Shown: positions 23,201 to 30,764 of the stretch, in pieces
Layout: the number at the start of each line of letters is the position of its first letter
Position numbering within the stretch: the first letter of the stretch is position 1
From: Octopus bimaculoides
Taxonomy: Eukaryota
Direction of reading: 5' to 3'
DNA length: 33,018 nucleotides
Assembly (NCBI RefSeq): GCF_001194135.2
Contig: NC_068991.1
Span: 60,618,814-60,651,831, forward strand
Translations under genes and position numbers: made by a program
The notes under the pieces: generated by a model
What the model was told of the DNA's origin: nothing
The model's input: the letters and a program-made list of their open reading frames with translations, nothing else
Databases searched by the model: none

Positions 23201-26200
23201 TCAAAGGAGCAGAAATGACGTACTACAAAAGAATTTAAAGGTAATGTAATTCAAGGGTAAAGTAAAAAATATCTATGAATCAGATACTCCAAATCAGTCC
23301 TCTTGTTGTTTGTTATTGTTAATTTTATTGATTGTTTATTAGATTTGACTATATATACATATAAATACATACATATATATATATATATATTGCCGGGAGC
23401 TTATATGCCCCATTATTAGACTATTTTTGTTAGTCATTGCATGGTGATCACTATAAGCTTTAAACTTAAAAAATACCTTTATTATTTACAGGATTGTAAA
23501 ACTCGGCACCGTATAACAAAACCATTCACACCGAAAGCAAATACACGCACACACACACACATACATATGTATGTGTAAAAATTAACACTTCCTTCTCCTT
23601 CTCGAAACCGAATCTAAGAATTCTCGGTCGTCCAAACCACCACGATCAACAGGTGCGAAAACAGGTTTTCTTTGTCCTGTCAAAAAGTGATTGATCATCT
23701 CCCTTTAACCTTCGACCTAAGGCCATGTCAGGCGAAGTTCAAATGGACAGGAGCTGACCTATTTAGGTACAAACCCTGCTGCAGTATGTCTGTCTTTCTA
23801 GCTGCCACGATTCTTATAAATTCAGTGGTCAATAAGACAGAGGGGAGAGAAGGTCCTGGCAGCCAAACAAGGAAGCTCTACGGCACAACAGGTTTTGGCG
23901 ACAGCAGAGACCAGAACAATGTTCCAAGTTCCACGGTAGACGACTGTATCAGATGACTACATACACACACACACAAACATATATTCAATTGTGACATACC
24001 ATTTCCACAGATGTACCCTGTTTTTATTTGTAGCAACTCGTAGCAGTTGTCAACATTTTGCATGTAGTGAAGAATTATGTGTACCAACGACAAATTAAGT
24101 CTGGTGAATAAATTATATTTTAATTATGAATCGATTCACTCATTTGTTTACTTCAAAGGCATACACATTCTTTTTGCATCTGTTTACCACCATACACATC
24201 TAACCACTACATTTGAAAACACTTATGTATGCAAACACAAACTTAGTCTTACAAATTTCTTTATTATGTTGGCAGTTCTGAATAATTCCATGAGTAGTGA
24301 AATAATTCTGTGAGAAACAAACCTGTGACATTTGACTCCAGATCTACAGGTACCTCTTCTTCATCCTCTGCTTCTGAAGAAGAAAAAGAAAATGAAAAAG
24401 AAAGACTGAAAGCAAAAAGCAATTGAATAATAAACCTGAGCTAGTCTCAGCAACAACTGTAACTTGTCTACTTTAAACACAAAAGTTAAATCTCTTTGAA
24501 ATCACTCCATGTCATTTTGAGAGAAGAAGAAAACACTGAATGAGGTAGAAATGGACGGTATGTATGAATAATAGATGGGATGATCATGCCTGAAATACTT
24601 TTCCTGTATGAATAGGTTCAGTAAACTTTTTAATAGGTACGCCTTAAGAGTTTCCTTTAGCTGTGTCCTTAGTGTAAAAAGAAGATATTAGTAGGCAGAC
24701 CCACACCCGAGACAGCGGAAGAATGCTCATGTAGAGGTAACACCATATGTCTCCTTAATGGCCACTGTAACAGGGAAACAGTTGCATATGAGACAGAGGT
24801 AACATCAAAAGGCCCAAACAGGCAACCAAATGTGTAGAAGTATATGGGAGCAATAGAAATTCCCTTCAGAGCCAGTTTCAACAGCCATATGTCCTCCTAA
24901 TATCCCAGAGAGATGAAATGCCACAGCCCTGGCCAAGCACATATAGTCATTAAAGAAAAACTCTGTACAATACAGAGTGGAGAATCTTAGAGAAGAGCAA
25001 AACTTATTTTAGTTGCAGCAGAGAATGCAGATTATGTTTAGCTGATAAAAAAGCCCACACATCTATCTAAACTGCAGAAGTGAGATTTTTAATCCTTGCC
25101 CACATGAAAGAAGGTATATTTTATTGTACCTATAGGCTCCATCATGACTATAATCAGCAGTTCTCCATCTTCAGCTCTTTCATCACCATATTCTGAGAAC
25201 CTTGTTAGGATTTTAACCAAAACATACAAACGGACACACTCAGACACATATGTACCCTTACATGGGATTAAGCATTTGAACACCTGCCTATCCCCCACAA
25301 AACCCCTACACACATTCCAACTCTATATGAATACTAACCCTAGCCCCTACACAGAAAAAATTCTTGCAGACTTACAGCATCTCAGAGACCTTTGGGGTCA
25401 AGGGACATAACTCGATATCTTAATATAACTCTTGCCGAGTTTGTTTTGTCTTTTTTCACAATATCCACAAACTGGATGTGTTTTTTCAGCTCCAATAACA
25501 GAGAACAGTCACAGTATATTTTTTCCATATCTGCCAGTTCTGACGAACATGTGGTATTGCTTAACCATGCTATTATCTAACATCTGGTTTAGTATCTAGA
25601 GTGAAACCAACTGTTAAAATCAGCCACAATGAATATATAATACTGTACACTTCAATTAATATACATAGATATATGTGTGTATGTATGTATGCGTATATGT
25701 ATATATATATATATATATGCATGTATGTATGTAGGTGTTAGATAAGTATAGATAAATATGTAATTATGTATGTGGTTATGACGGCAAGGGTTCCAATTGA
25801 TCCGATCAACGGAACAGCCTACTCGTGAAATTAATGTGCAAGTGGCTGAGCAATCCACAGACATGTGTACCCTTAATTTAGTTCTCAGGAGATTTAGCAT
25901 GACACGTAGTTCTCAGGAGATTTAGAGTGTGACAAGGCTGGCCTTTTGAAATACAGGTACAACAGAAACAGGGAGAAAGAGTGAGAGAAGGTTGTGGTGA
26001 AAGAGTACAGCAGGGTTCGTCACCGCCCTCTGCCGGAGCCTCATAGAGCTTTAAGTGTTTTCACTCAATAAAGACTCACAACACTCAATCTGGGAATCGA
26101 AATCACGATCCTACGACTGCAAGTCCGCTGCCCTAACCACTGGGCCATTGCGCCTCCACTATGTGTGTATACATAAATATACACATACGCATGTGTTTGT

Positions 26201-29200: not shown

Positions 29201-30764
29201 TGGAAATAAGTGAGGGTTAATGCCAAAAAAGGCATCTATCTGACCCATGTGAGTATAGGAAAGAGGATGTTAAATGATGATGGTGATATAAATATATTTG
29301 TGCATGTACACATATATATGTGTGTGCATGCATGTTATATACATATATATGTGCATGTGTTTATGTGTGTGTATATATAAACACACATGCGCGTGTGCGC
29401 GCGCACACACACACACACACTCATTGCTTTCCATCATGATGGTGGGTGTGCACGATATAATGAGTGGTTAGGAAATTAATTCTCTCAGTAACCTACCTGT
29501 GACAGTGGGCTGGACATCCAAAGGTGTCTCTTCTTTTTCAGCTGCTTCTGAAGAAGAAAAAGAAGGCAAAAGATTGGAAAGAAAACAGTTAAATAATAAT
29601 TGTTATGTAGTGGATCTTGCATGCACAAAGTGGATTTGATCCATCATAGCAAAATTTAAATTAACACTTCAACAGAACTTTTCCCATGGTGGAACAATGG
29701 TTTTTCTGTGACAGCAATTTTACATTCGCCAGATTGCCTTAGCTAGGCCAAAATAATGTCTTCACCACTTGACCCTTATAACCTCTTCTACTTCACCGAA
29801 ACCTAGAATAGAGATAACAAGACCACCAACTAAATCTATCGTTTTCAATGATATGTTTATCTTTCTGGATAGTTATAAAAGCAAGAGCCCCAAGCAAAAA
29901 GATAATCCAGTCACTTCGGTGACGACTCAACCAGTTAGTCACTTCAGTGACAACTCATTGAGAACGAAGTCTGGCTGACCAGCTAGAACCTTGGTCAGAG
30001 GGAGAAATCTTGGTGATAAGTCTGATCAATATCTTGAGCAGCTAGGTAATGGATATTCTCAGAAACCTACCTGCGACATCAAGTGTGTCTGCTTCATCAA
30101 CTGCTTCTGAAGAAGAAGAAAAAGAAGAAAAATTGAAAAGAAAGCAAATAATAAATGTCACACACCTTCATGTTTTTGGTCAGTACCCAGCAACAGATGA
30201 TGCACACATACATACATATAATTATTTTCAGGATCCAATAAAATTAAAGGGTTTTAATAACAAAAGTTGTTTGGGTAGACAAGAAATGTATGAACTGTAC
30301 TGTGATCGAGGTCAGCTGACCTGCTGATGTGAATATCTCTCTGAAAATCAAAGAGAAAGAAGGTAACTATGGACAACTGCTTCAAAACCTCCAGCTTCTA
30401 TATCCGGATTACAAATTTACATTTTTACTGATAATAATTGGTGCATTTGGTTTTGTAAGTAAACGCCTAACTTTCAGTCTGGATAAGCTTGGATTTTCAG
30501 GAAAAGAAATCAACCAACTAATTTACCCATTACGTATACAATCTGTAAGTAGAACAGCAAAACTATGCAAGACTTTTCTCAGGTTTAACATGTGACATTG
30601 TCTTCGTTATCTACATTTCAAAGATGGCGCTTTATATCTTTGACAGAAACCAGCCCTTTCTTCAGAGAAAGAGTTCAAAAGATTAAATACAGAAGAGACA
30701 TACATACATACATTCATACATTCATACATACATACATACATACATACATACATTCATACATTCA

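Follow-up and report, generated by a model that had tools for sequence, protein, structure and literature searches.

The IQUB gene and its array of small exons

Are four small, duplicated exons in a gene of Octopus bimaculoides a cassette from which transcripts choose, or are they ordinary coding exons that together lengthen one acidic linker? The question arises in a stretch of 33,018 nucleotides of contig NC_068991.1 (hereafter the window). As the initial annotation had proposed, the gene is IQUB: its product matches the IQUB-like domain PF25805 of Pfam (E 8.5e-11, 41.9 bits, cut-off 27.8) and the human IQUB chain 8j07_c2 (E 6e-77) in four collinear stretches, one of which aligns 14 residues to VIVIQTYYRQWHAK. 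Further structure matches are mouse 9fqr and Chlamydomonas FAP253 (7jtk). An N-terminal ubiquitin-like (Ubl) domain followed by a conserved central region with an IQ motif is collinear with the solved IQUB chains; the Ubl domain matches 2daf at E 1.2e-8, and exon 21651-21785 aligns to the Ubl domain of human IQUB (2daf, 8j07). IQUB is an adaptor that anchors radial spoke 1 of motile cilia and sperm flagella, and its human, mouse and Chlamydomonas orthologues sit at the base of this spoke within the axoneme (PDB 8j07, 7jtk; PMC11755891). By orthology, octopod IQUB would occupy the same position.

Upstream of the first Ubl exon, reading the minus strand and extracting the exons yielded four homologous modules, m1 to m4, with exons of 36, 51, 96 and 51 nt. 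The features of the array and its surroundings are:

31954-32307, minus strand: upstream IQUB exon, 354 nt, phase 1-1; acidic N-terminal region ending in ...SLSEEEK, donor joined to m1
30107-30181, minus strand: acceptor flank of m1, TTATTATT...T-rich tract...TTCTTCAG (alignments A1/A2, nhmmer envelopes)
30071-30106, minus strand: exon m1, 36 nt, phase 1-1; encodes (E) + 11 residues
30012-30070, minus strand: donor flank of m1, GTAGGTTTCTGAGAA...ATTA...CTCA (alignment A1, nhmmer envelopes)
29604-30021, no strand assigned: high-copy transposable-element sequence filling most of the m1-m2 intron, outside the duplicated module
29497-29547, minus strand: exon m2, 51 nt, phase 1-1; encodes (E) + 16 residues
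27094-27159, no strand assigned: assembly gap region (N at 27122-27131) in the m2-m3 intron, inside a SINE-like repeat
26319-26414, minus strand: exon m3, 96 nt, phase 1-1; encodes (E) + 31 residues
24323-24373, minus strand: exon m4, 51 nt, phase 1-1; encodes (E) + 16 residues
29548-29625 (m2), 26415-26493 (m3) and 24374-24452 (m4), minus strand: acceptor flanks equivalent to that of m1 (A1/A2, nhmmer)
29438-29496 (m2), 26261-26318 (m3) and 24267-24322 (m4), minus strand: donor flanks equivalent to that of m1 (A1, nhmmer)
21651-21785, minus strand: first Ubl-domain exon, 135 nt, phase 1-1; encodes (V) + 44 residues

Exon m1 reads AAGCAG...GTCGCAG, preceded by ...TTCTTCAG and followed by GTAGGT; m2 reads AAGCAG...GTCACAG before GTAGGT; m3, behind the acceptor TTTAG, reads AAGTCA...CCGGAG before GTGTGT; and m4 reads AAGCAG...GTCACAG before GTTTGT. 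All four lengths are multiples of three and the phase-1 frame is free of stops (4/4). Coordinates, lengths, phases, open frame and the likeness of the acceptor and donor flanks were exactly as the initial annotation had described them (exon extraction, alignments). The introns m1-m2, m2-m3 and m3-m4 measure 523, 3,082 and 1,945 nt; introns here are packed with SINE-like and other repeats.

The acidic linker reported for this protein is real: m1-m4 encode 78 residues directly before the Ubl domain, of which 31 are D or E and 3 are K or R (net charge about -28). Both 51-nt exons, m2 and m4, end in ...VT, as had also been noticed, and m4 joined to the next exon gives SNVT|VKVLLLP. This junction matches DSLATVKV in human and mouse IQUB and NVTVKF and SATVKF in rotifers; the (A/V)T that is conserved ahead of VK(V/F), where the Ubl domain begins, comes from m4. 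Inside m3, at 26345-26408 of the minus strand, Tandem Repeats Finder detected a tandem repeat with a 12-nt unit (5.3 copies, 96% matches) that encodes EEAV/DEAV. The linker is probably mostly disordered: a single-sequence AlphaFold model, of low confidence (mean pLDDT 48), suggests that it lacks structure, save that the EEAV repeat of m3 may form a helix.

Homology extends into the introns

The sequence shared by the modules does not stop at the exon borders: in alignments A1 and A2 it takes in about 75-105 nt of intron ahead of each exon and about 60 nt behind it. Module pairs match at E values from 1e-9 to 9e-25 (pairwise blastn), and in leave-one-out nhmmer searches of the whole 33-kb window each omitted module was recovered at E 3e-27 to 1e-31. 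Because the flanks are homologous as well as the exons, the alignments show tandem duplication of a local DNA segment, exon plus intron flanks, and not convergence of coding sequence.

The copies are of unequal length and 64-77% identical to one another. Mean identity is about 74% for the acceptor flanks, about 67% for the donor flanks and 68% for the exons, on a metric whose background is high (about 0.59). Flanks and exons are hence about equally diverged (67-74% vs 68%), leaving no excess of flank conservation to explain. Between m2 and m4, 9 of the 16 codons differ, and all nine differences are nonsynonymous; nothing in the codons suggests that purifying selection has preserved the exact residues of these two exons, and only acidity and the exon ends would be under such constraint. 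We also attempted to derive the order of duplication from pairwise identities, and gave it up as the signals conflict and yield no consistent tree: the closest pair is m1-m3 by acceptor flank and m3-m4 by donor flank, while m2 and m4 share exon length, 3' end and a long downstream alignment.

Assembled transcripts include all four exons in series

The initial annotation had read the array as a cassette, either combinatorial (up to 16 isoforms from skipping of the four symmetric exons) or mutually exclusive, tuning the linker between sperm and other ciliated cells. Several features of the gene agree with such regulation. Since every exon is phase 1-1, any subset keeps the frame; a junction from m2 to 21785 would recreate TVKV just as m4 does, both exons closing with ...GTCACAG (VT); and mutually exclusive splicing has a classic source in exon duplications of this tandem kind (PMC9013439). 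The transcripts speak otherwise. In RNA contigs assembled from nine public runs, all of this species and belonging to at least five studies (X25, X26, X12, X8, X6, X2, X4, X29 and X30; contig depth 6.9 to 203), the only assembled path was 31954>m1>m2>m3>m4>21785. These are Logan contigs, built at k=31, which drop rare variants.

Each step of the path can be followed in the contigs. The donor at 31954 continues into m1 sequence (30077-30106) in X25, X4, X2 and X6. The joint between m1 and m2 (29547|30071, with GT..AG on the minus strand) is present in X25, X26, X12, X8, X29 and X30, and in 4 raw reads of X22, raw RNA runs having been sampled at about 6%, too few reads to quantify minor isoforms. 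The loose end at 29497 of m2 corresponds to 26387-26414, the start of m3, and the loose ends of m4 correspond to 26321-26345 (the end of m3) and 21756-21785 (the start of the Ubl exon) in X25, X6, X2 and X4. Seen from the other side, m4, at 24325-24354, is the sole upstream partner of the Ubl exon at 21785. Each loose contig end has a single match, at the exon end expected for it. In the contigs inspected, m3 is covered by its first 28 nt after m2 and its last 27 nt before m4, with the middle 41 nt uncovered; its 12-nt repeat would be the reason why contigs at k=31 break within this exon.

The modules are thus real, expressed exons, as had been proposed, their junctions being present in RNA contigs. 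Mutually exclusive use is contradicted outright by joint inclusion in single contigs: one holding m1 and m2 runs into m3, and another holds the end of m3, m4 and the Ubl exon together. As for combinatorial use, no second partner was found at 31954, 30071, 29497, 24373, 24323 or 21785 in any run inspected, and no contig with a skipped junction was found in the nine runs, within the limits of contigs that lose rare variants and of few raw reads. The single path, with one partner per splice site, holds even within one study whose runs differ about 25-fold in depth (X25 167 vs X12 6.9). Because all four exons are included in every assembled path, the duplication stands and the claim of alternative splicing is not supported, an outcome that the initial annotation had itself foreseen.

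We consider m1-m4 to be constitutive coding exons, spliced in series into the main mRNA in an ordinary lengthening of the linker, with a probability of about 86%. A regulated cassette appears unlikely on this evidence. Just as unlikely is skipping of some exons by cell type or stage, for example in spermatids versus epithelial multiciliated cells; if it did occur, IQUB at the base of radial spoke 1 would come in isoforms whose acidic linkers, ahead of the Ubl domain, differ in length and charge.

Copy number and assembly

A different origin for the array would be a dispersed repeat, such as a fragment of a transposable element with splice sites, that became an exon of IQUB on four independent occasions. 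The abundance of SINE-like and other repeats in the introns would suit this origin, as would the T-rich acceptor tract at 30100-30151, which reaches a depth of 160-200x in genomic run X20. We nevertheless find it very improbable. The modules stand at single-copy depth in X20: with the low-complexity (TTC)n tract set aside, the exons, the donor flanks and the distal parts of the acceptor flanks are at 10-24x at a similarity of at least 80%. By comparison, words of the neighbouring transposon at 29604-30021, on which many RNA contigs from three species also fall, reach depths of 5,000-13,000, against about 10 in the flanking single-copy DNA. A search of both strands of the 33-kb window disclosed no fifth module, the other nhmmer sites (E of 0.007 or more) being merely opposite-strand GAA/TTC tracts, and the four copies, alike in orientation, phase and position, all fall within a single intron interval of a single gene. 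Judged by depth in X20 and by the searches of the window, the module is, as initially supposed, not a dispersed repeat.

The perfect 28-nt duplicate that flanks the assembly gap (27094-27121 equals 27132-27159) looks like an uncollapsed scaffold overlap, judging from the letters. The gap leaves the reading frame intact, since in RNA contigs 29497 is followed immediately by 26414. This duplicated 28-mer, together with the simple composition of the acceptor tracts and acidic codons, might raise the suspicion that the array reflects false duplicate contigs in the assembly, or a chance likeness of low-complexity sequence in which polypyrimidine tracts meet GAA-rich codons. Such an explanation is hardly credible. 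The divergence and unequal lengths of the copies are unlike those of assembly duplicates, transcripts carry all four different sequences one after another, and genomic contigs of X20 cover m1 and m2 without differences. A non-repetitive donor flank (GT.GGTTTCTGAGAAAATTAATTAC..ACTACTCATGG) common to the copies and leave-one-out E values of the order of 1e-27 or better also speak against it.

Other species and proposed origin

The array had also been called lineage-specific, a claim that survives in part. Against it, two related species carry at least some of the exons: in one (organism C), m2 and m1 lie in one contig with the joint 29550|30077, and in the other (organism B) an m4-like exon, ...GTAGATCTAGCGTCAAGTGTTACAG (VDLASSVT), stands directly before that species' own Ubl exon. 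In its favour, no array of the octopus type was detected at the IQUB locus of Argonauta hians (L001), either with the nhmmer module model or by scanning for short acidic exons of phase 1-1 that finish with T, a weak negative given that introns are unalignable at that distance and RNA support is lacking there. At 5514-5960 of the Argonauta locus, ENTVEGA-type repeats with a 21-nt period appear to lie inside one large predicted exon (a model without RNA support). In other IQUB orthologues (P0120, P0128 and P0130), too, the acidic N-terminus is variable and rich in repeats.

A protein search with the segment spanning the N-terminus, the modules and the Ubl domain gave no match. Likewise, a second protein search and a search of 1.84 billion representatives returned no octopod IQUB with its N-terminus, the only hits being a partial Argonauta protein and a single-exon fragment of 159 aa; P0124 led only to contigs of 951 nt without upstream exons.

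These observations are consistent with the following scenario. The ancestral unit would have been a segment of about 170-240 bp, comprising one small acidic phase 1-1 exon with intron on both sides (about 75-105 nt before it, about 60 nt after it), and its tandem duplication would have given rise to four exons. As the unit is frame-symmetric, each extra copy could be spliced in without breaking the frame. The copies would then have diverged to 64-77% identity, with length shifts only in multiples of three, and m3 would have been lengthened further, in frame, by the 12-nt EEAV tandem repeat. Transposable elements may later have spread the copies across about 6 kb. The last copy, m4, would hold the ancestral position, from which it gives the (A/V)T of the (A/V)TVK(V/F) Ubl start.

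Comparison with known systems

The classic surveys of tandem exon duplication are those of Kondrashov and Koonin in 2001 and of Letunic, Copley and Bork in 2002. The octopus array fixes the N-terminal exon structure of octopod IQUB, including four small exons of a kind that gene predictors can miss; outside annotation its importance is slight. Any transcript assembly makes the exons plain to see. They offer a clean case of an acidic linker lengthened by frame-symmetric exon duplication and then by microsatellite-like growth in one copy, and a reminder that a duplicated frame-symmetric array alone does not imply alternative splicing. If the length of the linker before the Ubl domain affects docking at radial spoke 1, lineage differences in the IQUB N-terminus could matter functionally.

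Duplication of exons in tandem within genes has been reviewed (PMC9013439, PMC9741552), and the IQUB array is a real instance of this known kind of event: m1-m4 are adjacent, in the same orientation, homologous into their introns and phase-symmetric. Most well-studied tandem exon duplications are mutually exclusive substitutions, whereas in IQUB all copies are included and form an internal protein repeat. With mutually exclusive clusters, such as exon 6 of Dscam and the human MXEs (PMC1431710, PMC6071210, PMC5740500), the array shares a series of small exons that are homologous and alike in the flanks of their splice sites. It differs in that the rule of one exon per mRNA fails, that all exons are of length 3n, with no frame incompatibility, and that with introns of 523-3,082 nt steric exclusion does not apply.

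The protein itself resembles IQUB/FAP253/CMUB116 of other organisms (8j07, 9fqr, 7jtk; PMC11755891) in the order of its parts (acidic N-terminus, Ubl domain, conserved central region with an IQ motif, and PF25805 domain), which show 35-48% similarity to human IQUB, whose Ubl domain starts at about residue 131 (PMC11755891). As in P0120, P0128, P0130 and the Argonauta locus, the octopus N-terminus is of variable length, acidic and internally repetitive before the ...TVK... start of the Ubl domain. A point of difference is that in this octopod four duplicated exons encode the stretch immediately preceding the Ubl domain. The Argonauta repeats, of ENTVEGA type, appear instead to lie inside one large predicted exon.

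A tandem array of small exons in IQUB

The minus-strand gene was confirmed as IQUB: translation of its downstream exons gives a match to Pfam PF25805, the IQUB-like domain, at E 8.5e-11, which passes the curated cut-off. The same translation is collinear with three IQUB chains of solved structure: human (8j07, axoneme; E 6e-77), mouse (9fqr) and Chlamydomonas, where the protein is FAP253 (7jtk, radial spoke 1). The aligned parts include the ubiquitin-like domain (also 2daf) and the IQ region. IQUB has been described as the adaptor by which radial spoke 1 is anchored on the doublet microtubule; asthenozoospermia results when it is lost (PMC11755891). 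The top database relative is a partial Argonauta hians IQUB (70% identity), which places the window in an octopod. Protein database searches, the first of which was word-indexed and gave only proteins under 580 aa, found no full-length octopod IQUB; the octopus-like entry that came closest, P0124, is an ORF of 159 aa from 951-nt Logan contigs, which covers a single exon and reads through into the intron.

Reading the minus strand from 24000 to 30400, we found the four small exons of the initial annotation (modules m1 to m4) in place between two larger ones:

31954-32307, minus strand, upstream flanking exon, 354 nt, phase 1-1
30071-30106, minus strand, m1, 36-nt exon
29497-29547, minus strand, m2, 51-nt exon
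26319-26414, minus strand, m3, 96-nt exon
24323-24373, minus strand, m4, 51-nt exon
21651-21785, minus strand, downstream flank of the array and first exon of the ubiquitin-like domain (Ubl exon), 135 nt, phase 1-1

The modules share phase 1-1 with both flanking exons, and all four are open when the first codon takes one base from the previous exon. A long T-rich tract ending in CAG (but TAG at m3) precedes each of them; their first bases are AAGC or AAGT, and GT follows directly. Homology extends into the introns on both sides, reaching about 75-105 nt upstream of the exons and about 60 nt downstream (MAFFT alignments A1 and A2). Blastn between module pairs gave E-values of 1e-9 to 9e-25, and an HMM built from any three modules recovered the fourth at E 3e-27 to 1e-31 (leave-one-out, 33-kb window). 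Such resemblance is far beyond chance, and the array is real at the sequence level.

A dispersed repeat could also give rise to similar flanks, and within the m1 acceptor tract the (TTC)n stretch, and only that, does reach a depth of 160-200 in a genomic run, as expected of low-complexity sequence. The module exons and their non-repetitive flanks, however, lie at depth 10-24, against a single-copy depth of about 10, whereas the element that occupies most of the m1-m2 intron (29604-30021) reaches 5,000-13,000 in the same run. In two other species, RNA contigs accumulate on this transposon and not on module flanks, and the 33-kb window holds no further module copy, all other sites (E ≥ 0.007) being a GAA/TTC tract on the opposite strand. 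The modules are thus not a dispersed repeat.

The 29604-30021 element also occurs in RNA contigs of three species, with single contigs at depths above 5,000-12,000 in runs X29 and X30, and appears to be high-copy and highly expressed. At least 6-7 copies of a SINE-like element (...GACACTTGCCCAAGGTGCCA..GGGACTGAACC..GAACCATGTGGTT..) lie in IQUB introns (13604-13698, 14334-14428, 18300-18394, 19386-19480, 23073-23167, 27293-27387 and about 31810-31880), and many of them have a (CA)n/(TA)n microsatellite and a conserved TTTCAGTTTCCATCTACCAAATCCACTCACAAGG block ahead of them (repeat families D14, D19 and D20). The segments 4541-5092 (plus strand) and 7867-8229 (minus strand) resemble the decayed remains of transposases. 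Two matches were found here, both sub-threshold: a weak one of a single ORF to HTH_32 (E 1.5e-4), and one to DDE_3 (E 9.6e-6) when two adjacent ORFs are joined into one query.

All four modules are joined in series in the mRNA

Expression and junctions were read from same-species Logan RNA contigs placed on small stretches. Every junction of the chain was seen, m3 being represented by its two ends, so that all four modules are expressed exons. On 29450-30200, four runs of one study gave one 542-nt contig each, joining 29547 to 30071 (minus-strand GT..AG, read as CT..AC on the plus strand), with the end of exon 31954-32307 at one loose end and the first 28 nt of m3 at the other; the same m1-m2 joint appeared in two more runs of a fifth study. 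For m4, four runs from four studies gave one contig of about 2 kb each, which runs from the final 27 nt of m3 through m4 into the Ubl exon. All loose-end sequences map uniquely to the expected exon ends in the window. Between the two contig breaks in m3 lies a 12-nt tandem repeat of 5.3 copies, which we infer forms a cycle in the k=31 assembly graph and so breaks the contigs.

This series arrangement in one mature mRNA path refutes outright the proposal that the modules are mutually exclusive. The proposed combinatorial skipping found no support: the single path was the same in all nine RNA runs, the sole contig at the upstream donor (31954) goes on into m1, and m4 is the sole upstream partner of the Ubl exon. 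Contigs of these runs, which were read blind to tissue and drop rare variants, showed no second splice partner at 31954, 30071, 29547, 29497, 24373, 24323 or 21785; raw-read RNA runs held just four junction reads. Contig depth within one study ranged from 6.9 to 167, indicating that samples express IQUB very differently, yet the same path assembles. Cell-type-specific skipping, giving isoforms of different linker length, is improbable, and these runs lend no support to low-level skipping either.

The m2-m3 intron contains an assembly gap (27122-27131, 10 N) inside a SINE-like element, with the same 28 nt standing in direct orientation, without a mismatch, on either side (TTTATTGGTCTCTTTTGCCGAACCACTA; 27094-27121 and 27132-27159). 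This signature suggests two overlapping scaffold ends left unmerged, in which case the true gap length would probably be zero or negative. Transcripts pass straight from the end of m2 (29497) into the first 28 nt of m3 (26387-26414); hence the gap does not affect the reading frame and conceals no expressed exon of the main transcript.

Origin and divergence of the array

Homology of exons and intron flanks, together with the splicing of all copies into mRNA, bears out tandem exon duplication. In the simplest account, a segment carrying a single small acidic exon, splice-site flanks included, would have been duplicated in tandem and, the exon being frame-symmetric, every added copy would have been spliced in, lengthening the protein. 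Copies are 64-77% identical, with exons and flanks diverged about equally, and 9 of 16 codons differ between m2 and m4, all nonsynonymously. From this pattern, selection appears to keep splice sites, frame, acidity and exon ends rather than the residues themselves.

Both 51-nt exons end in VT, as proposed, and m4 yields the conserved start of the ubiquitin-like domain: its ...SNVT plus VKV of the Ubl exon matches DSLATVKV in human and mouse, and NVTVKF and SATVKF in rotifers. Judging from these alignments, the ancestral exon must have been at the position of m4, and the same TVT end in m2 would be a relic.

Together the modules add 78 residues (31 D/E, 3 K/R), which a low-confidence single-sequence model leaves without structure save for a helix over the EEAV repeat. 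The linker could conceivably affect radial spoke function. Variable, repetitive acidic N-termini also occur in other IQUB orthologues, so that expansion of this region is a recurrent theme, with exon duplication the route in this gene.

The shared flank about 70-75 nt upstream of m3 (minus strand 26485-26500, GAGAAAATGAAG followed by GTATGT) and m1 (minus strand 30165-30181, AAAAACATGAAG followed by GTGTGT) looks like an exon end plus donor, and resembles the real upstream exon end (GAGGAAGAGAAAG followed by GTACGGACTTTATTA, 31940-31960). It shares the exact 15-mer GAAAATGAAGGTATG with the end of a predicted exon (6760-6951; compare 6935-6960) in the Argonauta hians locus L001. The unit that was duplicated may have reached back through a one-time mini-intron of about 70 nt into the 3' end of the exon before it.

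The array in other octopods

In one related species (organism C), RNA contigs cover m2 in two runs, and in run X35 one contig also covers m1, joining both. In another (organism B), the Ubl exon is 86% identical and directly preceded in the transcript by ...GGGACTTGTAGATCTAGCGTCAAGTGTTACAG, an m4 orthologue (24/30 nt identical) likewise ending in VT. The array was thus in place before at least three related octopod species diverged. In Argonauta hians, the Ubl exon lies at 8117-8254 of L001 in the same phase (acceptor cag followed by TCAAAGTT); no array was detected in the genomic sequence, either with the module HMM or by scanning for small, acidic exons of phase 1-1. The locus has instead a large predicted exon in which ENTVEGA-type units repeat in tandem. 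The array may be absent from Argonauta. The suggested lineage specificity holds only in part, since organisms B and C carry at least some of the modules.

The deposited Argonauta IQUB model (GCA_054771915.1) is partial, starting at L001 10001. Upstream of it, the two exons of the Ubl domain lie unannotated at 8117-8254 and about 9021-9116, as do candidate N-terminal exons at 5514-about 6170 (ENTVEGA-type repeats, 21-nt period) and 6760-6951; these exons (5514-9116) fall between IQUB and an Rrp15p-like gene.

Comparison with known systems

No paper in the literature searched names IQUB with octopus, and the IQUB array has probably not been described before. Events of this kind are well known: it is textbook tandem exon duplication (PMC9013439, PMC9741552), in the constitutive form that gives rise to repeats. 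It differs from the mutually exclusive type in that the IQUB copies are all included together.
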